Part shown: piece after piece, positions 4,274 to 64,000 of the stretch
Position numbering within the stretch: position 1 is the first letter of the stretch
Layout of the letters: every line of letters begins with the position of its first letter
Source: Styela clava
Taxonomy: Eukaryota
Length of the DNA stretch: 64,000 nucleotides
Assembly (NCBI RefSeq): GCF_964204865.1
Contig: NC_135253.1
Location: forward strand, 13,268,001-13,332,000
Direction of reading: 5' to 3'
Translations under genes and position numbers: made by a program
The notes under the pieces: model-generated
The model's input: the letters and a program-made list of their open reading frames with translations, nothing else
Told to the model about the DNA's origin: nothing
Databases searched by the model: none

Positions 4274-7200
4274 CTAGGCAGGATGAAATCATTTATTAAA
4301 AACAATGCAAAACAGATTTTTCGAAAATAAAAAGCATACACTCACCTTAAGAGGCATATTTGGAGAGTCTTCAGCGAGACCTATTTCATCAAGGACCACA
4401 AGTGTACCAAATTTACTTAAATCTTTATTCTTTTGGCGCTCTGCCGCACAAGAAAAAACTTTTTCTATTCCGCTTGCTTCAGTTAGAGCGCTGCATTGAA
4501 AAATCAAAAATTCCATCTGAATAATAATATATTGCAATCAAATATAAATACCAAAAGTGAATTCCTTAATTTATTCAATGTCTAGTACCTTCTTTAAACT
4601 CCTACAAAGACTTGAAGTAGATGATGAACCTTTCATATTCGCTTCCACAATTGTTTTCGATAGTGATTTAGAACTACCAGGTTTTCCGACTAGATATAAA
4701 GGAAGCTTGGCATCAGCACAGATTGTCATGAGATACACATTTTCACACAGAGCTTCATTCCAGGCCACATTTTCCATACTTTTCAAATTACGATGAAATA
4801 GTGTTTGACAAGAAACGAATTCCTCCTTGATTTCAAAAGGTGATAAATGGATATTTATTTGTTCCAATACATGAGACAATTCCATCCTGAAGTTTTGTCT
4901 TTTTTCTAAAGATACATGATATGTGATGTCAATAGCATAAAGAAGAGAACGTAAACTATCTGAAATATCGATTGTTTGAGAATCTGGCTGTCTGTTTTTT
5001 CTTCTCTTTTTCAAGATGTCTTGAATCTTGGGATAAATTTCTTTGTTCTTGAAAAACCACTTGTAGAGTTTTAGTGTTCTTTCAACATCTCGAAGACTTA
5101 CATATCTAAAAAAAACATATTAAAAATGAAAACATGATAAATGCATTTTTAGACTGTTTCGTTTGATCAATTTTAGTTTTCCCACCTGCATTCATCTTCC
5201 TGTTTCTTCATATAAGCTTGAGCTCTCGAGAGAACCAAATTAATTGTAGCTTTATCTTCAATGGTTATCGCAAGTTCCGAGCTTAGCTTATCTGTCATTT
5301 TTTCAATATAAATCTGCTCTGTCTCATTAGATAATTGTCCAAAGTCCCAAACAAATGGTTGTATGCTGGGAGGGAGAGCAACAACTTTATACACTAGTGT
5401 ACGCATGGCAATATTTCCAACACATTTATTCGAATCTTTCGAAGAAACACGATAACCAAGCCCTGATGATTCCAACTTTTTAATAGCTTCAGGTGATAAT
5501 TGCTTGTATGGGTTACATGCTGCTACAATCTGTATATTTGATTCTTCAAATGATTTTCCATCAATGGTCAAGTCACACATGACTTCTTTGATAGCATAAA
5601 TTGCTATAGTTGTATTTGCTTCATCATAAAATAAGATTTTCATTTTGTTTGGTACCATGGTTGTATTATTCAGAGCCTCGTTGACACTTTTATGAATATC
5701 CTCAACTCCAATTCCCCCATGTATTTTCAAGGTCTGCATTTGATTTCCTTCCTTTTTCTTTCCCATCATTAAACTGTTCATGAATTCAATCATTCTAGTT
5801 TTTCCACATCCAGTTTCTCCCATGATGATCACAGGAATTTTACATCTGAATCTCATATATATAGCGATCATTTTGAGAACATTATCAGTTGTCAACTCAT
5901 ACGAAGGGTCAGGATCAAAAACAGTTTTAGAATCTGGATTATTAACTCCCATTATTAAACATAGTTTCTTGATCATTTCTGTCCTTGAAAGTTTGTGAAA
6001 GTTGTGTCCAAGTTCAATACCTTGTGCACCAAGTCCAGCAACAAGGTCTGGGGTAGTTATTCCTTCCTGCACCAATTGTTGGTTTTTATCAAGTAAATTG
6101 CCATATTTATCAATGTTGACATTAATGAAACTCATAGAAACCCTGTCGTCATTGAAAAACACATAGGGATGCTCATATTCTTCCCATTTTCTACGTAGTT
6201 GATGAGCTTCAAATATATCCTGGTCCTCTCCATCGTTGGCACTTTCGTCAGATATATAAAGAGAAGGTGTGGCAAAATCTTGAGACATCCTTATCATAAA
6301 TTTCACAGCTAAGTTTTTCAGACCTTTTAATTCATGTTCCATCATTTGACAAAAGACAGATTCTTCACAACTGACAAGTTGGGTGTTGAGAAAGCTAACA
6401 AAGTGTTTCATTTGTCCCCATGAAGGATTATTCATTCCACAATGTCGTAATAGTACTTCAACACATTTTCCATAACCTGACTGATTTAGTGATTCTGAGT
6501 TTGGAGCGTAATTTTCGGTAATATCTTCATTTTTCTCATGACGTTGTAGATAATAATAAGGCCTTTGGAAAATATCTGAATTGAGCTCTTCAATATCCAC
6601 TATAACTTTATTGTCAGAAATATCATTTGCAAGGTTCTTAATAACCTGCACAGGTGAAATGCACTCAATGCTTGGAAGAAGTTCCAGTGTATGAGAATAG
6701 CCAACCTAGCATAAAAATGATATGCTATAACAATAACCAACCAAAATTAATTCATTCGTATATACTTATTATCAATAATGAACTTACAGCACAGGATGGA
6801 CGCTTTTTCATTTCAATGTAATATGAGTGCTCTTGTCGACACCTCCATACCTTTCCTGTAGAATCAGTAATCATACCCAAGATAAGAAGATCAAACATGA
6901 ACTTTTCAATTCCAATTTCAACCTGTTGAAAAAATATAGAAAAATAATATTAAAACACAATATATCATTGATTTATCACAGTGTTCTTCAACTTTTTTGT
7001 TATTGTGGAACCCCTGATATAATTTTTCGTTTTTTATGGAACCCCAATTAACAAAATGAAAAAACAACACAAAATACTCGTAACACGAAATATTTGTAAT
7101 TCAAATATTCCTACTTCAACAACAAACAGAAAGAAGGTTCCAAGCGTGGAATTCAATGACTAGGTTGTTTTTGCATTTTCTTTGAAATCTACTTGAATCG

Positions 7201-47439: not shown

Positions 47440-50400
47440 ATGCGATATGTACCTTTGGGTTACTGAAAATAAAATTTAGTTGATTCAACAAAGCATATTT
47501 TCAAGTTTTCATAATAAATATTAATCATACAAAAGATGTTAAAGTTGATAAAGATGTTAAGTATTAAAACGCTAGTGGTAATAGTTGCAAAACACAAAAA
47601 AAATCTTCCATAATACCCGCACTCTCTTCTCAAAACATTATTTCTTTTCAACTGCAGTGTGTTTCACTATCTACACACATTATTGGCAGACAAACCCAAA
47701 ACTAATAATTAGGCAAAATTATTTCATAAAACATTTTTATGATTTTTAAAACTCCAACTCTGACATATAACTGTGACTAAGAGTGGCAAACAATCATATC
47801 ACGAAAGAACAAACAAATACACACAGAGATTGCATTTGAACCCCATCGATTAAATGGTGAGGAGGTTTTGGAAACGTTAACATAAGTCCGCAATCGTGCA
47901 TACTAAAACTATTTTATGCAATTTACGCTTACCGAGCAGTGAAGTACAGTGTGAAAAATGCAGAAGTTTAAACGCTCAGTGGTACAGCTCAAATAAAATC
48001 GGCCAATCAGAAACAATCAAGTTCTGCACAAACAAGTCTTTCTTCGAACGGAAGGATAACCTTCACTTAGTTTCTAGATAATATCTTCAAAACATAAATA
48101 AATTAACAGAGGCCGTCGTTATTCTTGAAACCTAAAACTATAGAATCCCCTAGAATATATACTGGTTGCTCGATGGAGATAAACTACCACGGGTCTACAG
48201 ATTACGTTGCATAAAACAAATTTGATTTTGACTTAGCAGTTACATAGAAAATAAGGGTTAAACTTAAGCACCGATATAAAATAACTCGTTTTTCATGATT
48301 ACCAGACTTTCGGCCAGGCATATTGAGAAACGCGATCAGATTCATTTGTTAATAAAAAAAAATCATTGAATCACAAAATGCTGTGAACATTTTGATGTGA
48401 TTAATTTCGGCAGAAAGTTATTATCCAACGACAAATGTTTTGCAGAAGAATGAATTTTGAATCAAGTGATTTTCTGGTGTAATGATGCGAAACCACATAC
48501 GCTATGAGCATTTGGGTTAATTTACTGATCATAAAATTTAATTAATGCAACTCATTTAATTGCATATTTTTAAGTTTGCACAAAAAATAATAATCATGCA
48601 AAAGATGTTAAACTCAAAAGTAATAAAAAAAGTAGTGGTTATAAATGTAAAACTGATAAAATTCTTCGGTATAATAACTGAATTGTCTTCTAAAATCATT
48701 ATTACTTAGTTTCTGAGTAATCGCAGATTTGCATTGTGTTTTACTATATACACAAATTATTGGCAGGCTGAACCCTAAGTAATAATTACTCAATAATGTT
48801 AAACTTGACATAGAATTGATTTTAAAATTCTCAAATCCAACATAACTGTGACAGTGAATAGCAAAATTCAAATTACAAAAAAACAGGTTTGATAATCTTG
48901 CATCCTAAAACTATTTTACACAATTTACACTTTCAAACCAGCTGAGCTGCTGTGTCGAAAATGCAGAAGCGTAAAAGCTCGGTCGTACAGCTCAATAAAA
49001 ATTGACAAATAAAAAGCAATCGAGCTTTGCACGGCTTGGTGCAAACAAGTCTTCGTTCAACATAGCAACCATGTGCGAACAAAAGTTTAATCACCGTCAC
49101 TACCCATAGAATCCCCTAGAATATATATATACTGGTTGCTCGATGGAGATAAACTACCGCGGATCCATAAATTACGTTTGCCTAAACAAATTTGATTTTG
49201 ACTTAGTAGTCACGTAGGTAATAGGGGTTCAACTTTAACATCGATATAAAATAACTTGTTTTTCATGATTACCAGAATTTTGCCGAGGCATTTTGCAAAA
49301 CGTGTTCTGATTCAATTATTAATAAAAATATTCATTGATCCACAAATGCTGTGAACATTTTATGTGATTAATTTTGACAGTAAGTCATTATCCAGCGGCA
49401 AGCGTCCTTCAGAAGAATGAATCAAGAAGCAAATGACTCTCTGGCTTAGTAACTGATTCCGAAATCCACCAACTGATGGTCGTTAGGCCCTCCAAGCAAA
49501 GTTCGAGAAAGGCTACAATGCGTTAAAGAATTTATATCTAATGAGTGTGACCTGTAAGTGGTGTTGCTTAAGCTGACTTGTTGTTGTTGTTGCAACATTA
49601 TCATATATTCTTAACGTGAAGATAACTTTTATCGTAATTTGCATTACATTAAGCTTGTCAACTACATGCCTCATGACAAAGTTGTCGAGTCCCGGTACTT
49701 CAACTATTATCGACCTTTGTCAAGCTTCGTTCTGAACTTCTGGATGGAGAAGTAACGCTTTCTGAAACAAGGAGAAAAAATGGCGAAGATGGTTTTTTGA
49801 CTGGAACCAGACCTGCATATATCTATATACTTGGCAGGTATAAACCCAACGACTCAAAATTCATATGGGCTTCGACATACAAATTTGAACTATCATTTAT
49901 TTTCAAATCGTTTTCAAATTTTAAACACGTGTTCGAGAATTTTCCTCCCCGCACTCAGAGGTCGTGAATATTTTGATGTGATCAATTTTGCATAAAAGTT
50001 ATTATCCAACGACAAGCGTTTTGCAGAAGAATGATTTTTGAATCAAGTGACTTCCTGATACGTGTTAACTTTCGGATCATAAAATTCAATCAATTCAATA
50101 TATACATTCATTTGCACGATTTCAGGTTTTCACAAAAATAATAATCAAACGAAAGATGTTAAAGTTAGAGGTATTAAAATATATTGGTTATAAATATAAA
50201 GCTGGTGAATAATTTCCGTAATAACCACACTATTATCTCGTAACATTTTTTTTTAAATTTCTGAGTAATTGCAGTATGTTTTACTGTTCACACAAATAAT
50301 TGGCAAACTGAAAGCAAAGTAATAATTTACCAATATTATTAAACTCGACATAAAACTGATTTTAAAACTCTCAACTCTGATATAACTGTGACTGTGAGTA

Positions 50401-52080
50401 GCGAAAATCGAATTAAAAAAAGAACAAGAAAATACAAACAAAAATTACATTTGAACCTTATCGATTCAAGTCTAAATAGTTAGTCATTTACAACTGGGTT
50501 TAGAAATATGGGACATTTTTGTATTTGCAACATGCAATGCTTCAGTTTTTAGATCATTTCTTGGATACCCTAATACATCAACACAAGTCGGTAATCTTGC
50601 ATTCTGAAAACAATTTTACGCAATTTAGGCTTTCCTATCAGGTGAAGTATTGTGTCGAAAATGCAGAGGTGTAAACGCTTAGTCGCTCAGCTCAATAAAA
50701 ATTGACAAATCAGAAACAATCGAGCTTATGCACGGCTTAGCGCAAACAAGTCTTTGTTAAACACAGCAACCACGCACGAACGAAATGTTAATAACCGTCA
50801 CTACCCATAGAACTCTCAAAAACATCTACTGGGTGCTCGATGGAGATAAACTACCGCAGGTCCACAGATCATGTTTACATAAAACAAATTTACGGGTTAA
50901 ACATTAACACCGACATAGAATGACCTGTTTGTCATTATTACCAGGCACTGACATATTACGCCTAGACATATTGCGAAATCTGTTCAAATTCAATTGTTAT
51001 TAAAAAAATCATTGAACCTTATGACAGTGTGAACAGCGACAGAAATCAAACGACAAGCGTTTTGCAGAAAATGACTTTTGAAGCAGGTGCATTCCTGGTA
51101 CAATGATATGGCACCAAACACGTTATGAGACTTTGGGTTAATTTAGTGGTCACAAGATTCAATTAATTCAACTCATTTGTTTATATATTTACATGTTTTT
51201 ACAAAAATAAATAATAATTCTACAAAAGATGTTGAAATTGAAAGAATTAGTGGTTATAAACGTAAAACTGATGAATTTCTTCCGTAATAGCCAAACTCTG
51301 TTCTCAATACGTTATTCCTTTTTGGTTTCTGAGTAATTGCAATATATTTTACTGTTTATACAAATTGTTGGCAGACTGAAATCAAAGAAATAATTTACAG
51401 ATAATATTAAACTTGACATAAAACTGATTTTGAGATTTTAAAACTCTCAACTCCGACATAGCTGTGAATGTGGGCAGCAAAAACCAAATCACAAAAGAAC
51501 ATGAAAATTTGAAACATCTCGATTCGAGTTTAGATGGTGCACCATTTACCACTGGGATATTTTGGATATATTATATTGGATATTTTTGTACCTGTAAAAT
51601 CCAATAAAATATCTACTGGGAGCTCGATATTGTGTGTCTGCTTCATATCTGCGCAATAATCATTTGCTCTGTATTTGCGCAAGTTCAAGCGTTGACTGAC
51701 AATATTAATCACCGTGGTTTAGTAACCTACATGGTTTCAGACATACATACAATAGTTTCATTGATGTTCGAGATGGATTATACGCTGCAAGATCATTGTA
51801 TTTCACATATTTGTGTTTATAGCAATATTTATATGTAGGCCAAGCATGATCTCTTCGAAACGTTTAGAGTTCCACACTCATATCGAAGATAAGTGGAACT
51901 TAACTAACAAAGGAGAAACAACCGCGGGTCCAAAGACTACGTTTGCATATAACAAATTTAATTTTTGATCAAGCAATCGCTTTCAATTATTGATAAATAA
52001 AAAAGTTTATTGAACCTCACGACACATTTTGATGAGATCCACTTCGGCAGTTATTATCCAACGATAAGCGTTCTGCAATA
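47440..52080. repeat. Degenerate tandem array of ~1 kb units immediately upstream of exon 1
   Basis: Marker gctcgatggagataaactacc at 48168, 49138, 50835 and degenerate near 51912; gttattatccaacga and aaaatgcaga..gtaaacgctc blocks also recur. Confidence 0.8.
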
Positions 52081-52084
52081 AGGT

Positions 52085-52190
52085 CATTTCCTCCTTTCCT
52101 CGTATTTGTTATCCTATACCACGCATTTCTTCAGAACGATCGAAATGCATTGCAAATTTAGAATATTTTCCACATCCGGATTGATGAGTA
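52085..52190 (-). pseudogene. Decayed copy of coding exon 1
   Basis: DVENILNLQCISIVLKKCVV* vs exon 1 GVENSARLQCISVVLKKCVVY; TAG at 52114-52116. Confidence 0.75.
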
Positions 52191-52755
52191 TATTCATAAT
52201 TTTCTAGTAGTATTGACAATTGTGATATGTTAAACTTATTTCGGTAACTAAACAAAGGCTTATGATGTTTTACGAAAGAATCGCAGTCAACAGAACTCAA
52301 GCTATACCAAGTTTTGCCATCGCAGATTCCTGCGTTTTAGGTGTATACCTGCTCCTTTTCTGAAACCCTCGACTTCTTCTCTCTTATACATTAATGTAAC
52401 GCAGACCACGAGTATGAAATGTGAAGCGAATGATCGTTCGTCCACGGTTCCACAGAAAATCTCTATAATAATTCATATCAAACAATATAGATAACGTTTT
52501 GTTTATAAAACAATGAAATAAGATATATCAAGCATAATTACTAAAACATAGGTCAATTTACTGATCGCAAAACTTTTGTCTTAGACAGATATCAGCTTGC
52601 CAGAAAATGCCACAATATGATGCGCATTCTTAAAGATTTTGTCATTCTGGGTAGGCCGCGAGAATCCCATTTGTTAAGAATAGCATTTAGGATGAAATGC
52701 ATTTTTTTGATGTGGAACCGATATCTTAAGATCCTATGCTGAAATAACGCTGAGA

Positions 52756-53223
52756 CAGCGTTTTCCAAACTTTTTGCGCATGTGACACACTTTTGAAACA
52801 CAAAAATTTTAAAACCAAAATTTTACGTTAAAAATTCTAAAGAATTTATACGAGCTAGTTTGATTTGATTTAACCTAGCATTTTTATATTTTGTTGAATG
52901 CGAGATTGGGATATTCGCATTTTGTCATCAAATATTAATGCATTAGTGTAGGAGGAAACTGTAGTAGACGAATTATAAACGTATTTTTTTCGTAAGTAAG
53001 TTTTAAACCTGATCATGAATGTAGTGCGTAGGTCTAATAAAGTCTAAAGCACATAAAATTTCAAAAGATCAGTAATTCTGATACCACGATTTTAACGACG
53101 AAGTCACTTAAAATTGTTATTAAACTGTATCTAACCGGTTTGTTTGAAGTTCATTTGGCAGCAACATATCGTTCTGCAATCAACACACTCAATGTGTTGA
53201 CACACACAGTTTGGGCAGCTTTG
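52756..53223. mobile_element. Degenerate hAT-like MITE; partial second copy from 53763
   Basis: CAGCGTTTTCCAAACT ... AGTTTGGGCAGCTTTG with subterminal GACACAC. Confidence 0.45.
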
Positions 53224-54219
53224 CATTGGGCAAAGCTAATGCAACCAAGGACACACGTCGTCAATATGGTTAGTCATATCATACTGTGTTCTTATTGAGC
53301 TACATATAGTTCCGTGTTGCTGGCCACAATAGCGGTGGTTCATATGATTCAGCGTCGGCATTACTTAGCCATCGGCGAAGCAAAAACACGCATGAAACGG
53401 TTTATGGGCAAACCGCTAAAAATACAAGGTACAAATACATATACAAGAAATAAAGTGTTGCAAAGGTGGAATATTTCCCACATCCGTATTGATAAGTATA
53501 TTTATAATTTTCTAGTAGTATTCACAATTGTGATATGCATATATACTAAACGTATTTCGATAATTGAGCAAGGGGTTATGTTTTTTACAAAAGAAGCGCA
53601 TTCCATACAGCTCAAGTTATATTGAGTTTTGCCATCGCAGATTCCAGCGTTTTGGGTATATACCTGCTCCTTTGCTCTAACAATTGACTTCATCTCTCTT
53701 AAAGTTATATATCAAATGTAATGCAGAACACGAGCATGAAATGTGGTGTATTATTGTTCGGACAGCGCTTTCCAAACTTTTAAAACCCAAATCTCAGCTT
53801 GAAAGTTCCAAAGAATATATATGACCTATAGGTCGATTGAACATCGCATTTTTATATTTGGTTGAATGCGGTATTTGGATATTTGCAAGTTGTCGTTAAA
53901 TATTAATGCATGAGTGTAGGAGAACAGTTAATGTTCTATACAGTTAATGTACTATAGAAGAGTCGTATATTTCACGAAAAAGAGACTCCAGCTTGTCCGA
54001 AAATGCCAGTTATATAAATAGCGTCGATTTCAAAATCGCCAGTCAGACGTGTGAAATTGTTGACGCGACTCAGACAGGAAATCATTAACATCAACTCCTT
54101 CATAATGACTTATTATTGGTTTTGCAGAGGTGGGCAACATACGGCCCGCGGGCCGGATGAGATTTTGACCGGCCCGCTGACTGTGCATCAGTACATTATC
54201 ACTTTTAGTACATTATGAT

Positions 54220-54671
54220 TGTTACTGGGGCCAATAGTTAGTTTTCGTATTGTGTGTACCCCCTTTCAAAGTTAGCTCCTGTGTATTACCGCTAGTGGGC
54301 AGTGGTTCACTGATGTGTATTCTTAGTTACCGTCTCTTCGGCAAGAACCTGAAACCGGGAGCGCACATAGTAAATTTGCTCATCTACTTTATCTGTTTAT
54401 CGTAGAACTATTGGTTGGATAGACACAATTGTCATTTACCGCAATCAATTCCTGTATAGTTGCTTTATTGGATTACATTTAATAACTGAATACTCTGTTT
54501 AACTGTGGATTTACTTGGATTAAAATATCATTTCAAACAACAATATCAGAGCTGCATATTTCCAGTGTATCATAGACAGCAAGACAGGTTTTGGGAGCGC
54601 GTATAAATGCATTGCAGTCATAGACTATTTGCGGGGCTATTGAACTAAGTTGGACTTTGGCTACCGTAACA
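54220..54671 (+). repeat. 5' LTR (452 bp)
   Basis: TGTTAC...GTAACA terminal inverted repeat; by eye it differs from the 3' LTR by about 2 substitutions and 2 indels. Confidence 0.96.
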
Positions 54672-54694
54672 GTAAATGACAAAGTCTATCAGCC
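54672..54694 (+). promoter_or_regulatory. Non-tRNA primer-binding site complementary to LTR-internal sequence
   Basis: GTAAATGACAA is the reverse complement of TTGTCATTTAC (54429-54439); GTCTATC is the reverse complement of GATAGAC (54418-54424); no TGG motif. Confidence 0.7.
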
Positions 54695-54731
54695 TTTGAA
54701 GTATTTGGTTGTATTAAGAAGAGTGGAAGTA

Positions 54732-56766
54732 CCGTAAAAGCAGGTAACTTCGGATGATTTCACTATATTATGAACAATTTCTCCGCCGTTTATTGTTCAA
54801 TTGAAGCCAAACTTGGAATATAATACATTGAAGCCTTTCTCCTCGCGATAAACTCGGTTTCATATCAATCAATACTTTTTTTCATTCAAATTATTGACTT
54901 TATTTGCCTGCCGATCTGTATTCCAAATGTTTATAACTTCGGATGGCCACTTTTCGCTTTGCGTCACTTCGTCGTGAGAGAGAAATGTCTGCGTGATCAT
55001 TGACGCGTGATAACGTCGCTGCGTAGAACTTACGACGCCGTGATCCGTTTTGCGTGTCGCACACTGACGTTCATCTATGACGGCCGTTTTTGTGATTATT
55101 AATTCTTCCGGGTCGGCGGACATCAAAGTTTTATATATCTGGTGTACCCGTGTTTACATCGGCAACAGCTCTTGAAGACAAGAAGGACTGATTTCAAAAC
55201 CCAAATTAATTTTGTTCTGATTTAATCTTATGTGTTGGCTTTGATCTTACTTATCACCGTTTGTATACTATTAATCGTTCGAGTTTAAAGCGAACGGTGA
55301 TATTATTATCGTCGCCGAGATGGAGATATTTATTAAGACGATGATTGATGTTGTTATGCTTTGCACCCGCGATTGTGCGAATACTGAATTTTTATTTATA
55401 ATAACGATTGAATAAATCGGCCGTTATGCATTTATACTTGTCATAAGGCTTTTGGTCCTGATAGCGGGTCGGACACTAATTATAACTATATTGACAGTGT
55501 CGCGCCATAATTATTACCGCTAAATGCTTCAAAATACAACGCATGTAATAATTTTGCCCAGCCCTATTCCTGACGTTTCGCAAAACTAAACCATTTATCT
55601 CTTGACTATTCTTAATTTCATGAAAGTGCTATATCTTGCTATTATGATCGTTTCAATACGAAACAAAAATGAGACAACATGGGACAAATGAAAATAAAAA
55701 ACGGACGAATAAAATAAGTCGTAAAAGTAAAAATGGAAAACAATTTTTAATACAAAACAAAAATGAAACGAATGAAAATAATAAAAAAGAAAAATGGATG
55801 ATGAATTACGGTAGGTAGTGAAAGTAAAAAAAATGGAAGTGGACAACAATATGGAACAGTGTAGCTTGTGGCCGTGTTGATAATTCAGATGTAATGTATT
55901 CACAGGCAGATAGACATGAAACGGATAAAAACGCCAAAAACCTCCAACCTCCTGCTGTGTGCACCTGTGCAGAGTTTCATGCTCACCTGTGCAACATTCT
56001 ACTCTTAATATATTATCATCGCCGATCGTAAAACCTTGTCATTGTGATAGTATAGATACGCGTATCTGGCTGTTCATCAGCCTTACGTATCAACAACATC
56101 TATACGGTCGAAGAATGCCGAAATGTTAACACACAAATTTAATGTGCATTAATCGGATTCACAATAAATAAACAGCATATGACCGGGGCTATAATTAAGT
56201 TTTTGTAGGATTTGGTGACGAGGATCAGGTAGGAGTTTTCACTTTATATTTAACTACACGTGGCGCCACATAGTCTGGCGTTCAAATGTCGCAGCGAGTT
56301 ACGCACGAGCTACGCAATGTGACGTCGGCCTTAAATGGAGCGAAATTGAATCACGTTGTTGACGTCACGTTCAGCGTAAGCACCGTAACGTCGATATTTT
56401 GACGAAATTTTTAAATCAAAATAATATATTTTACTTGAATCTCGTACGACATCTCGTGATCACTGTAATTTTCCTTGTACATTGTGTATGCCCTCTAGCG
56501 ATTGACGGTCTTTTAGTGAAGTTAGCGTCGATAGAGGTCGCTATTTTAGCCGCTCAAAAGCGAGGTGTCAATTTTTGGCAAAAAGGTGATTTTTTGTGTC
56601 AAAAAATAAATCCTATTAGGCGACTGAATATGATAAGAGATTAAGATATATAAGGACTCTCTATAGAAACTGCCAGAAGCAGAATATGACGTAATTTAGT
56701 CGAGATATAAACGATTGAAAATTTCATCCGAAGTTATAAACCATCCGAAGTTACCTGCGTTTACGG
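54732..56766. mobile_element. Non-autonomous TA-target (pogo-like) DNA transposon inside the BEL 5' UTR
   Basis: 25-bp TIRs CCGTAAA(A/C)GCAGGTAACTTCGGATG; TA TSD (54730-54731, 56767-56768); internal copies of TAACTTCGGATG; no transposase ORF. Confidence 0.9.
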
Positions 56767-56952
56767 TAATTGACAACATATCTTCCAGCCTTTAGTAGAA
56801 AGGCGTAACAGTAAATGACAAAGTCTATCAGCCTTTGGAGTATTTGGTTGTATTAAGAAGAGTGGAAGTAATTGACAACATATCTTCCAGCCTTTAGTAG
56901 AAAGGCGTAACAGTAAATGACAAAGTCTATCAGCCTTTAGAAGAGTGGAAGT
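56767..56952 (+). repeat. 102-bp tandem repeat in the BEL 5' UTR (first unit starts at 54672 and is interrupted by the DNA transposon)
   Basis: CGTAACA|GTAAATGACAAAGTCTATCAGCCTTT at 54665, 56804 and 56906. Confidence 0.88.
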
Positions 56953-57133
56953 TCCAGCTTGGAGGCCTGAGTACTGTTGTGAAAGGAAAAAGTAGATTAT
57001 CAGTGGTGACAGCACTGATAAAAGCTGAAGAGTTTCCCTAGTCATTTAACTAACAGGAGTTTACAGTAACTGACTGGCAACAGTGTTGCTTTCCGTTTGG
57101 GTGACAGCAGGACAGTGTAAACAGATTTATTTC

Positions 57134-60100
57134 ATGATGAAATCTGCGCGAAAAAGGTTTGCAAAAGGTAAACTTGTAACTTCTGAGCCAGCATCCATGG
57201 AACATGGTGATATTGTAAACATTACAAAGAGAAAGATCAGACCGTCATCGAAAGTTGTGGAAAATAGGAAACAAGAGTTTGATCAACAGAGGCAAAGCGT
57301 ATCTAAACTTTGTCAGAAGCTTGTGAAACTATGCGAAACAGCAAAGCATGTTAGCCATATCCTAAGAGCATCATCTGCAATACGTGCATCTTCACGGGAA
57401 TTAATGGTGATGTGGTCAGCGCTTGAAGAGATGGTGTCAAGAAAGGAGAGGACATCTTTGTTTCGGGGTATTCAACAAGTGGACAGAGAAGTGAAAGATG
57501 CGACTAGGATTGCTGAAGAAACTGTTGATAATCTCATGGAAAAGAGAGATGAAAGTTCATCCAGAAGCTCCACATATCGGACATCTGCATCTAGTAATGT
57601 TAGTCATAAATCAGAAAAGATTGCTCTTGACAGTAAGCAAGAATGGTATGATTTACAGAAGGATGTTGGGGAACTCGAAGTTAAAGTAAAATCCGTGGAA
57701 GAAGAGAAGTTGCTCAATCTTCAGGCACTACATCTGGAATATCAAAGAAAAATGAAGATTTTGGCTGATGAAAGTCAACTTCAAATGCATAAGTTAATGC
57801 AGCAAAGCCAGTTGGAATTGCACTTGCACAAGAAGGAACTCGAGTCGAAGAAGGCAAGAGCACAAGTTTGCAAGAAGGTCCAGCAAGTTGAAAATCCTTT
57901 CGGGTTGAATGAAGAAGATTTTATTGCAAATTCAAGTAGTCAACAATCACAGATCTTGAAATCAGATTGGGATCATAGTTTGAAAACAATTCATGGAGAA
58001 GATAACTCAAATGATATTGTATGTGAGAATATTAATTCAGGTATGAATTCACAACATGCAAATGCTTTTCAGCATTCTCCATCAGGTGCGTACACTACAT
58101 TTGTTTCTCCTGAAGTTAACATGAATAGTGTTTCTCATGTAAATAATGATTTAAGTGCATGTTTGAGAGAGTTGGCAATATCAAATAGTATGCTAGCCAA
58201 TGCATATGCTTTGCCACAAATTAAAGTTGATATTTTTGATGGTAATCCATTAAAATTTCCTGCCTGGGAATCTGATTTTGATGCTCTTATTGAAGCTAAA
58301 ACTACCAATGTACGCCAAAAACATAATTTACTCAGTCAACATTTATCAGGGGATCCTGAAACAATGATTCAAGATCTTGTGTTGTTACAGTCTGATACTG
58401 CGTATGCAGAAGCAAAGGAAAAATTAAAGTCAAGATATGGCAATGAAAGTGTCATATGTAAAGCATTTCTTGACAAATTGGCATCATGGCCAAGAATTAG
58501 ATTTCGTGATGCTGCTGGAATTCAGAGATATGGTGATTTCCTTGACCAAGTCAAAGTTGCAAAACATAAGATCAAAGATCTGGAGGTACTTGATTTTTCT
58601 GTTGAAAGTGTAAAAGTAATTGAACGTTTACCAACCTATTTGCAAGATGCTTGGCGTGGTACTGTTAAAAATTGGAGATCAAAATATGGAAAAAATAGCT
58701 ATCCACCTTTTGATGAAATTGTTAAATTTGTAAATGAAGCGTCAGAAAAGGAGAATATTCCTGAGCTTGAACATATGAACAAAAATCGTGAATATGTGAA
58801 GTCATATGATGACAGGGAAAAGAAAAGTAAGTCTTTTTCCAGTTATAGAAGTGCACAGAATGCGAGAGCATATGCTCATAAAGTAGAAAATATGAATGCG
58901 AACAAATGCCCATTCTGTAGTGTTTGTCATCATATAGATGATTGTGATGAATTTGGTAAATTGTCAATAAAGGACAAGAAGACCTTTTTTCTGAAAGAGA
59001 GACTGTGTTATGGATGTGGTTCTAATAGAGGTCACAGGGTTAATTTTTGTAAGCAGAGGGTTACATGTAAGATTTGCAATAAGTTACATTTGACTGCCCT
59101 CCATGTGGATAAAACTCTTGATAAAAGTGATTCTAAATGTACTCAAGTTTGCACCATAGAAGGTCAAAGTGGTGGCAAACATAATTCTATGATTGTTCCA
59201 GTATTTGTGAGAAATAGTAAAAATCCAACTAAGGAAATCCAGTGCTACTGCATATTAGATGATCAATCTAATTGTTGTTTTGTTTCTGAGGAATTGCAAA
59301 AGCAACTTGATGTGAAAGGTGTACAGACACAGTTAAATCTCTCTACAATGATGAAATCTGGAGCGTTGGTGTCTTCGCAGAGAATCAGAGGACTACAAGT
59401 GATGAGTATGGATCGTCAAGTAAAGATAGATATTCCACAAGCTTATACTCGTGAGCAAGTACCTGCGAGCCCTTCACAAATTCCAAAACCTGAAGTTGCC
59501 AAACAGTGGAAACATTTGGAAAAAATTGCAGACAAACTTATGCCTTATGATTCAAAATTGAAGGTCAGTATTCTCATTGGTAGTAACATTCCTAGTGCGG
59601 TAAGGCCTCGTGACATAATTCATGGAAGGGAAAATGATCCATATGGTCAAAAGTCTATATTGGGTTGGGGAATAATTGGAAATGTTTGCAAAAATGGCAA
59701 ACGTGATGATAAAAGTTCAATATCTCATCGTGTCGAAGTGACACAAGATTGTTCCACAGCGGAAAATCTGTTAGAGAGCAATGGTAAATCATCATTTGTA
59801 TTTTCCACAAAAGTAAAAGAAATTGTAAGTCCTCAACAGATCAATCAGATGATGGAAATAGATTTTGTTGATCACAAAAGTAAGCATGAAAATATGTCAA
59901 TTGAGGATCAAAGATTTGTGAATATACTTTCTGAAAATGTTATTAAATGTGACAATGGAATGTATGAAATGCCTTTACCATTGAAATGTGACCAAGTTAA
60001 ATTACCGAATAACAAGCCCATGGTATTGAAACGAGTAATGCAATTGAAAAAACGATTTGAAAAGGATTCAGAGTATAAAAGTAAATATGTTGAATTCATG

Positions 60101-63100
60101 GAAGATATGATAAAAAATTATGCTGAAAGGGTGCCAGAAAATAGACTTGTTGTTAGTGATGGAAAAGTTAATTATGTGCCACATACTGCTGTTTTTCATA
60201 GTAAGAAGAAAACCATCAGAGTTGTTTTCGATTTGAGTGCTTTGTATAAAGGAGAATGCATTAATGATCATTTGCTCACTGGACCAGATCTTATGAGTGG
60301 AATGACAGGAATTTTGTGCCGATTTCGGAAAGAGGAAATTGCTGTAATGGGAGACATAAAAGGTATGTTCCATCAGTTTGTTGTACGAGAACAAGACAGA
60401 GATTTGTTGAGATTCTTTTGGTGGAATAATGGTAACACCGAATCAGAATTAACTGAGTATAGAATGACTTGACATCCATTTGGTGCTCGTAGTAGCCCAG
60501 GTGTTGCAATGTATGGATTGAAATTAGCTGGAGATGATGGTGAAGAGGCATTTGGGATAGAAGCAGCTGATTTTGTGAGAGATAATTTTTATGTGGATGA
60601 TGGTTTACAGTCTCTCGAAACTGTTAATGAAGCTAAGTTGCTCATTAAAAATAGTACTTCTCTGTGTGCCAAAGCAGGTCTAAAGTTGCATAAATTTGTG
60701 TCGAATCGGAGAGAAGTCCTAGAATCTGTTCCTGAATGTGATCGGGCTAGTAGTGTAAAAACAATTGATTTGAATAATGATCCTCTTCCAATTGAGAGAG
60801 TTCTAGGTATGCTGTGGGATGTGAATGATGATGTTTTTCGCTATCATTTGCAATTGAAAAATCAACCACGAACCAGAAGAGGATTTCTATCAATTGTGAG
60901 TTCTATATTTGATCCAATGGGATTTCTGTCACCTGTGATATTGGAAGGTAAGAAAATTTTGCAGGAACTTTGTAAAAGCAAAATTGATTGGGATGATCCT
61001 ATCCCAGAGAATGTACAACCAATCCAATGCATGGATTGACGACTTACATGGCATTGATTATTTAACAATTAGCAGATGCATCAAACCACCAAATTTTGGA
61101 GTAGTGAAAGTTGTTGAAATGCATCATTTCTCAGATGCATGTCAGTCTGGTTATGGTCAATGTTCATATGTCAGATTGGTGAATGAAAATGGAGATTCAC
61201 ACTGTACCTTGCTCATGGGGAAATCTCGTGTTGCTCCGTTGAAGCAAATTTCCATTCCAAGGATGGAATTGACAGCAGCTACAATTTCTGCACGAATGAG
61301 CAGATATTTACAGGAAGAACTAAGGTATGAAAATATTAAGGAATATTTTTGGGTTGATAGTATGGTGGTGCTGGGTTATGTGAACAATCCAGTGAAAAGA
61401 TTTCATGTATTTGTTGCAAATAGGATACAACAAATTCTTGATGTGTCTGATGTTAGTACATGGTTACATGTTGAATCTAATCAAAACCCAAGTGATTTGG
61501 CAAGTCGTGGTATATCAGTAAAAAAGTTAATTGCTGATTCAAAATGGTGGAATGGTCCTGAGTTTTTGCAATGTAAAGGAGCTTATGAACCACCAGAAGT
61601 TTCCTATGTACCAAATAATGAAACAGATGCCTTGTTGAAACATGAAATGAAAAAGGCAACAGCGTTCATAACAGTTGAAAAAGAAAATACTGTTGGGTAT
61701 AATTTTGATATTGATAGACTGGACATATTTTCTTCTTGGTTCAAAGCCAAGCGAGCTGTGGCCAACTGTATTCGATTTTGTCACAAGCTGAGAAAAGTTG
61801 ATTGTGCGAATAATTTGGAAGTCGAAAATTTGTAGATTTCAGAGAAAGTAATTATCAGATGTTTACAGCAAATTCATTTTTCAGAGGAAATAGAGCAGCT
61901 GCAAAGTTGTGCAGTTTCTGGTGCAATTTTGGATCGAGCCAAAATTAAAATTCGAAACAAACTTAGACGAAGTTCAATTTACAAATTGGATCCATATATC
62001 GATGAAGATGGACTAATTCGTGTAGGTGGTAGAATAGGGAGAGCAAATATGCCCATGGATTGTAAGCATCCATTGGTTTTGCTAAGACATTCTCATGTTA
62101 CTAATTTGATTATTCGTCATTTTCATATGAAAGTTCATCATATGGGACGCGGAATGACACTGAATGAGATACGTCAAAATGGGTATTGGATTGTTGGAGG
62201 CACCTCAGCTGTGTCACAATTTATAACTTCATGTGTTGCATGCAGACGTATCCGAAGACCTCTTGAGGTTCAAAGGATGAGCGATCTTCCAGAGGATCGT
62301 GTGAATGAAGCAGCCTTGTTTGATTATTCATCTGTTGATGTTTTCGGCCCTTTTGAAATAAAGGAGCGTAGATCTATTTTAAAGAGATATGGTATAATAT
62401 TCACTTGTTTATCTTCCAGAGCAGTTCATTTAGAGTCTGCAAATTCATTAGATACAGATTCATTTCTCAATACCTTGAGGAGATTCCTAGCAAGACGAGG
62501 AACAATTAAGCAGTTGAGAGCAGATTGTTGAACAAATTTTATTGGAGGAAGAAACGAATTACTAAAAGCTATTGGTGAGATAGATCAATGCAAGGTCAGA
62601 GAATATTTATTGTCTAATGAGTGTGATTGGTTCGAATTCAAGTTTAATGTTCCAAAATGTAGTCATATGCATGGAAGTTGTGAACGTCAAATAAGGACAG
62701 TTCGAAATGCTCTGGAGCCAATTATGCAGAAGTTCGGTTCACAGCTTGATGATGAAAGTTTTCGTACTGTACTTGTGGAGGCTGAACATTTGGTTAATTC
62801 TAAGCCACTTACAGTTTCTAATTTAGGTGATGTGGGTTCACCCGAGCCATTAACACCAAATCATCTTTTGACGATGAAGCCAAAGGTTCTTCTGCCTCCA
62901 CCTGGACAATTTCAAAGACCTGATGTATATGCAAGACGTCGATGGAGACGAGTCCAGTACATTGTGAACCAATTTTGGTATCGATGGAGATTGGAGTATC
63001 TACAAACACTACAACCAAGAGGGAAATGGACTAAAACTGAACTGAATTTATGTGTTGGAGATATTGTCATAGTGAACGATGAGAATGCCCCAAGAAATGA

Positions 63101-63308
63101 ATGGCAACTTGCCAGAGTTGATGCCTTGTATCCGTCTGAGGATGGCCTCATTCGAAAAGTTAGAGTTCTTGTTGCCGATTGTAATCTTGATTCCAGAGGC
63201 AAACGAACAAAAGCGGTGACATACCTCGACAGACCGATACATAAATTTGTGTTGTTGGTTCGTGCAGCCAATGATGGCGATTCCCCGGACGAGGAGCCAA
63301 CATCTTAG
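57134..63308 (+). pseudogene. BEL/Pao gag-pol polyprotein, disrupted
   Basis: Gag IFDGNPLKF; three Cys/His knuckles; protease ILDDQS; RT FYVDD; RNase H HFSDA; integrase HHCC plus D-D-E; C-terminal FWYRWRLEYL domain. Stops at 60470, 61833 and 62529; frameshift near 61020. Confidence 0.93.
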
Positions 63309-63389
63309 TTTTATTACTTTTTGTACTGTACATATGTTTCGTTTTAAAAAAGTTTTCTTTGCCAACAAAGAACCCTTTTTGGGGAGCCA

Positions 63390-63846
63390 TGTTACTGGGG
63401 CCAATAGTTAGTTTTCGTATTGTGTGTACCCCCTTTCAAAGTTAGCTCCTGTGTATTACCGCTAGTGGGCAGTGGTTCACTGATGTGTATTCTTAGTTAC
63501 CGTAAGGCCTCTTCGGCAAGAACCTGAAACCGGGAGCGCACATAGTAAATTTGCTCATCTACTTTATCTGTTTATCGTAGAACTATTGGTTGGATAGACA
63601 CAATTGTCATTTACCGCAATCAATTCCTGTATAGTTGCTTTATTGGATTACATTTAATAACTGAATACTCTGTTTAACTGTGGATTTACTTGGATTAAAA
63701 TATCATTTCAAACAACGATATCAGAGCTGCATATTTCCAGTGTATCATAGACAGCAAGACAGGTTTTGGGAGCGCGTATAAATACATTGCAGTCATAGAC
63801 TATTTGCGGGGCTATTGAACTAAGTTGGACTTTGGCTACCGTAACA
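63390..63846 (+). repeat. 3' LTR (457 bp)
   Basis: Direct repeat of 54220-54671. Confidence 0.96.
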
Positions 63847-64000
63847 ATGATAATTCATTCTGTGTTTTTTATTCTCTATTTTTGAAACTTTACTTTAAAC
63901 GCGATTTATAACTTACTTTCTTGTATTAGCGAAGAAATATGTGATTAAGATATTGAATACTAATCATGTTATAATCCGGCCCGCCGGCTAGAGAAGTTGC

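Follow-up and report, generated by a model that had tools for sequence, protein, structure and literature searches.

How does an LTR retrotransposon begin reverse transcription when the sequence that abuts its 5' LTR does not look like a tRNA-type primer site? This question is raised by a BEL/Pao element of Styela clava that lies within a 64,000-nucleotide stretch of genomic DNA (the window; NCBI RefSeq assembly GCF_964204865.1, contig NC_135253.1, positions 13,268,001 to 13,332,000 of the forward strand). A first-pass annotation of the sequence had noted that the 11 nt following the 5' LTR are complementary to a stretch inside that LTR and had proposed tRNA-independent self-priming, by analogy with Tf1 of Schizosaccharomyces pombe. 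Here, the complementarity was re-examined in the window, in related families of the same genome and in metagenome relatives. The coordinates of the relevant features are given in Table 1.

Table 1. Features of the BEL/Pao element and its surroundings, in window coordinates
Position	Strand	Feature	Basis and remarks
47600..53700		Several families of diverged direct repeats upstream of the element	61-84% identity, spacing about 1-2.6 kb
54215..54219	.	Target-site duplication ATGAT, 5' copy	The same 5 nt follow the 3' LTR
54220..54671	+	5' LTR, 452 nt, TGTTAC...GTAACA	Differs from the 3' LTR by 2 substitutions and one 5-nt indel
54388..54402	+	AT-rich TATA-like box about 27-41 nt upstream of the motif (inferred promoter element)	Read from the sequence; a comparable AT-rich box lies 22-36 nt upstream of the motif in families B and C
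54413..54424	+	LTR side of the extension helix: GGTT, bulged G, GATAGAC	Pairs with 54684-54694
54429..54439	+	Proposed self-primer, TTGTCATTTAC	Perfect complement of 54672-54682; predicted cut after C54439
54519..54524	+	ATTAAA, candidate poly(A) signal	Would place the R/U5 border near 54545 (inferred); family B has AATAAA 65 nt and family C has ATTAAA 127 nt after the start of their motifs
54672..54682	+	Primer-binding site core, GTAAATGACAA	No spacer after the LTR
54684..54694	+	Distal side of the extension helix: GTCTATC and AGCC	
54732..56765	.	Secondary insertion in the leader: 2,034-bp non-coding DNA transposon with about 28-nt terminal inverted repeats (starting CCGTAAAAGCAGG...) and a TA duplication	Absent from other copies of the retrotransposon; no Pfam hit; not part of the mechanism
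56804..56940	+	Leader tandem units, each repeating the last 7 nt of the LTR plus the full primer site	Exact copies at 56811-56821 and 56913-56923; one-mismatch variants at 56766-56776, just upstream of this range, and at 56868-56878
57083..63308	+	gag-pol remnant, broken into at least five ORFs	57083-60472, 60509-61039, 60984-61835, 61929-62531, 62610-63308
63381..63389	+	Polypurine tract region, GGGGAGCCA, directly before the 3' LTR	The same motif precedes the 3' LTR in family B and a close variant, GGAGAGCCA, does in family C
63390..63846	+	3' LTR	Copy of the motif at 63604-63614
63847..63851	.	Target-site duplication ATGAT, 3' copy	

Assignment of the element to BEL/Pao was confirmed by a Pfam search, which identified DUF1759, Peptidase_A17 (split over two frames), Integrase_H2C2 and DUF5641. 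This copy is dead, and its pol region is broken up. At least six other full-length copies at 97-98% identity are present in the genome, and all carry the same sequence after the LTR. The DNA transposon inserted in the leader has many copies elsewhere, with at least 19 other places in the genome matching its first 170 nt at 99-100%, which suggests a recent burst of a non-autonomous Tc1/mariner-like element. The number of leader tandem units differs between copies of the retrotransposon (2 or 3; 56766-56940 of the window and locus L003, 1951-2090), and the leader of a further Styela family, D, also repeats its GTAAACGATTT unit. These repeats could be extra landing sites, decoys or scars of mis-priming.

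The reported complementarity is real. The primer site starts at the first base after the terminal CA of the LTR and is the exact reverse complement of the LTR motif. A second helix follows, in which GATAGAC (54418-54424) pairs with GTCTATC (54684-54690) across a 4 x 1 internal loop (ACAA 54425-54428 against A54683), and AGCC (54691-54694) can pair with GGTT (54413-54416) if G54417 bulges. The first-pass coordinates for GATAGAC were one base off, but the description was otherwise right. Both the MFE and the centroid folds of 54410-54700 contain all three helices (z = -2.97). To establish whether such an arrangement could arise by chance, the LTR was shuffled, and an 11-nt complement anchored at the first base after the LTR was obtained in 5 of 20,000 shuffles, against an analytic expectation of 3.6e-4. 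The extension helix beats 98.6% of shuffles (p = 0.014).

The default expectation for an LTR element is priming by a tRNA, a tRNA half or a tRNA fragment, and this is documented in BEL/Pao, for example in Achilles of Bactrocera oleae, which uses tRNA-Tyr (PMC4580426). However, no TGG occurs anywhere in the 23 nt after the LTR. The exact 14-mer of the primer site occurs 22 times in the 377-Mb genome, of which 16 occurrences are in copies of the family and 6 are elsewhere, and none of these six is a tRNA as judged by ARAGORN. At up to one mismatch, counts do not exceed those of a reversed-pattern control, and the window holds no tRNA gene. Although the full tRNA set of the genome could not be compared (a search with RF00005 returned only 63 top hits, mostly from a few gene clusters), tRNA priming is considered very unlikely, and the stronger argument against it is comparative.

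A search with the integrase C-terminus revealed many BEL/Pao families in the same genome, and LTR pairs were retrieved for representatives. Relative to the family of the window element (family A), family B is 60% identical in that protein segment. It has identical LTRs, an ATCTT duplication and an uninterrupted 2,124-aa gag-pol ORF that contains Pao-type domains, and a family B polyprotein is 100% identical to LOC144425718 [Styela clava]. Copies with 100% identical LTRs and an uninterrupted ORF of about 2,124-2,139 aa are found at several loci (for example locus L036, 1129-9140, G000:C6), and the family was therefore active very recently. Family B pairs TGTATTTTAC inside the LTR with GTAAAATACA after it, and family C (58%) pairs TGTCAGTTAC with GTAACTGACA. 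Both sites lie at offset 0, with the motifs 198 and 222 nt from the LTR end, respectively. Compared with family A, this amounts to two compensatory double changes in family B and one in family C, and in all three families the LTR motif is followed by CG. Anchored matches of this kind were obtained in 45 and 15 of 20,000 shuffles for families B and C. One host tRNA or other host RNA cannot match three different sites, whereas each site matches its own LTR. The divergent family A LTRs L019-L021 are truncated and lack a primer site, and thus give no covariation data.

The analysis was then extended to 14 metagenome contigs carrying BEL/Pao elements whose LTR ends could be defined independently of the hypothesis, from two LTR copies in ten cases and from the terminal inverted repeat of the LTR in four. 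Together with seven Styela families this gave 21 elements, of which twelve (families A, B and C and nine metagenome relatives) have a perfect complement of 9-15 nt between the LTR interior and a site anchored 0-4 nt after the LTR. Reversed primer sites gave 1 of 21, and each positive element has a shuffle p of 0.035 or less. The 3' end of the proposed primer lies 62-232 nt from the LTR end, and the longest complement is 15 nt (contig L112). When the duplexes were aligned from the 3' end of the primer, positions 1-3 were almost fixed, with the primer ending in TAC and the site starting with GTA, whereas positions 4-9 each carried two to four different Watson-Crick pairs with no mismatch among the 12 elements, which have nine distinct site sequences. 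No primer site begins with TGG. A chance inverted repeat, or a neutral by-product of a rearrangement, is therefore strongly disfavored, even though AT-rich LTRs give many short matches and an unanchored search for inverted complements upstream of the gag ATG had a high background (34 loci against 25 controls at 9 nt or more). Metagenome contigs can be chimeric, and in the element L063 the two LTRs (145-326 and 6924-7103) are 88% identical downstream of TTTAC but unrelated upstream of it, such that only the 3' LTR carries the perfect 11-nt complement; this is either a recombinant element or an assembly chimera.

Nine of the 21 elements show no complement of 9 nt or more, namely Styela families D and E1-E3 and contigs L099, L106, L113, L134 and L135. 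The test therefore does not fire by default, and the mode is either not universal or can rest on shorter duplexes. Family D (54%) has only a GU-rich 11-12-bp candidate at offset 1 (13 of 300 shuffles) and family E2 has a similar one, both of which are regarded as inconclusive. Families E1-E3 (loci L041-L046; about 45%), together with L099, L106, L134 and L135, represent a second group of BEL/Pao elements with polypurine tracts ending GGGGCC..., which has neither a TGG-type primer site nor a long self-complement. Families E1 and E3 share AGTTTTTTGAC after the LTR, whereas L099, L106 and L134 show only a 6-7-nt match that follows a TTCAG context in the LTR, which may be a short version of the same arrangement or may mean nothing. 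In the relatives L059, L060, L061, L069 and L068 the complement to the primer site begins exactly at the A of a TCAGTT initiator-like motif (TTTC-AGTTTTTAC, or TC-AGTTGGCAA in L068), as would be predicted by a Tf1-like model in which the first nucleotides of the RNA are the primer. However, an Inr-anchored test gave 6 of 78 loci against 0-7 for shifted controls, and this observation was not used as evidence.

On an RT tree of 77 sequences, the positive elements fall on both sides of the deepest split. The trait is therefore widespread in this marine sample and may be old; the origin independent of Tf1/sushi elements that the first-pass annotation inferred is not addressed by these data.

Given the geometry of the duplex, the covariation across families and phyla and the absence of a tRNA-type site, Tf1-like self-priming is the best reading of these data, with a probability of about 0.7, although the mechanism is inferred from comparison without a mapped transcript start or an observed primer cleavage product. 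In this model the genomic RNA starts in the LTR at or a little upstream of 54429, and its 5' part folds back over the roughly 230-nt R-U5 region so that ...UUGUCAUUUAC pairs with the 11 nt that follow the LTR. A cut after C54439, probably made in Tf1 by the element's own RNase H, would leave a 3'-OH opposite the first base after the LTR, which is where a primer's 3'-OH must sit. Reverse transcriptase would extend that end through U5 and R, and the first strand transfer would use the rest of R, from 54440 to about 54545. Because plus-strand strong-stop DNA copies the primer, the primer site would be rewritten from the primer in every cycle. This is the established logic of retroviral primer-site inheritance, and its inferred application here would explain why the complementarity stays perfect while the sequences drift.

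The inferred LTR architecture of families A, B and C is coherent with this model, since the AT-rich boxes and candidate poly(A) signals would make the motif the start of R, with an R of roughly 60-150 nt, but these motifs are weak evidence. RNAs modeled to start at the motif fold, in both the MFE and the centroid structure, with the 5' end paired to the primer site in all three families, although the whole-region fold energies are unremarkable (z = -0.9, +0.4 and -1.5). Inr-like TCATTT (family A) and TCAGTT (family C) lie inside the motif, and a start at their A would leave only 6 paired nt. In addition, a canonical TATAAA lies at 54603-54608, and if transcription started after it the motif would be in U3. 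Assembled contigs of sequencing runs, which are RNA only by guess, extend from the internal 3' end through the whole LTR into the primer site and cannot show RNA ends. Self-priming in trans or from the 3' copy could be envisaged, with the motif in U3 or at the U3/R border and the primer supplied by the 3' LTR region of the same RNA, by a co-packaged RNA or by a short LTR transcript. The further 16 nt of upstream complementarity in family A and the arrangement in L063 would be compatible with this, but no known element works this way, and the position of the candidate poly(A) signals and the predicted fold-back fit a motif at the start of R. This alternative is thus considered improbable.

Covariation shows that the pairing is maintained, not that it primes. 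The duplex could instead be a functional RNA structure with another job, such as hiding the primer site, closing the 5' leader for packaging or dimerization, or controlling gag translation, with an unidentified host RNA as the true primer. The additional helices beside the core are consistent with such a role, but the extension stressed in the first-pass annotation is not general, being significant only in families A and B and in contig L078. The extra copies of the primer site in the leaders, and the nine relatives that manage without a long complement, could be viewed in the same light. However, the duplex is anchored 0-4 nt after the LTR in every positive element, which is what priming needs and what a mere closing helix does not. 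Moreover, no TGG-type or conserved alternative site is visible for a host primer. A purely structural role therefore appears unlikely.

The closest known systems are Tf1 and Tf2 of S. pombe and the Tf1/sushi/Tcn1 clade of Ty3/Gypsy chromoviruses, for which self-priming has been reviewed (PMC6317226, PMC6934838, PMC4600332). In common with these, the Styela element lacks a tRNA-type primer site, has about 11 nt directly after the LTR complementary to its own LTR where R is expected to begin, has a predicted fold-back of the 5' RNA end, and in some families has a second helix beside the core duplex. It is nevertheless not a member of the Tf1/sushi group, since its domains are Pao-type with no Gypsy RT or chromodomain hit. 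The loop closed by the duplex is often longer (62-232 nt), the duplex varies from 9 to 15 nt, and the primer end (..UAC) and the start of the primer site (GUA..) are conserved. The plant Ty1/copia TAR lineage (Houba, Osr-1) is also predicted from sequence alone to self-prime outside Tf1/sushi (PMC6317226), but belongs to the Copia superfamily and has no sequence relationship. Achilles shares the superfamily, gene order and a primer site directly after the 5' LTR, whereas Styela families A, B and C match their own LTR and, as far as could be compared, no tRNA. Hairpin or 5' fold-back priming proposed for ancestral LTR elements and DIRS (PMC3601003), and the GalEa "conserved hairpin site" (PMC6934838), also invoke the element's own RNA, but are proposals for other element classes with different geometry and no primer site anchored at an LTR end. 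No report of self-priming in BEL/Pao was found in the open literature, although earlier notice in subscription journals or Repbase Reports cannot be excluded, and the main BEL/Pao survey (PMC3118150) does not discuss primer sites.

A broader possibility, doubtful on present evidence, is that self-priming is the general and ancient way of starting reverse transcription in a large radiation of BEL/Pao elements in marine animals (tunicates, and probably echinoderms and cnidarians), with the conserved primer end and primer-site start described above. All three LTR-retrotransposon superfamilies would then contain self-primers, which would support the idea that self-priming came before tRNA priming in LTR-element evolution.

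Self-priming has been demonstrated only for Tf1 and has been inferred for its Gypsy relatives and one plant Copia lineage. A BEL/Pao version backed by covariation would put it in the third superfamily, and would also explain why tRNA-based annotation pipelines fail to find primer sites in many marine BEL/Pao elements. The comparison gives a simple sequence rule for annotating them, GTA... after the LTR matched by ...TAC inside the LTR. It also provides recently active natural families in a laboratory-accessible chordate, Styela clava, in which the old question of whether self-priming preceded tRNA priming can be addressed by comparison.
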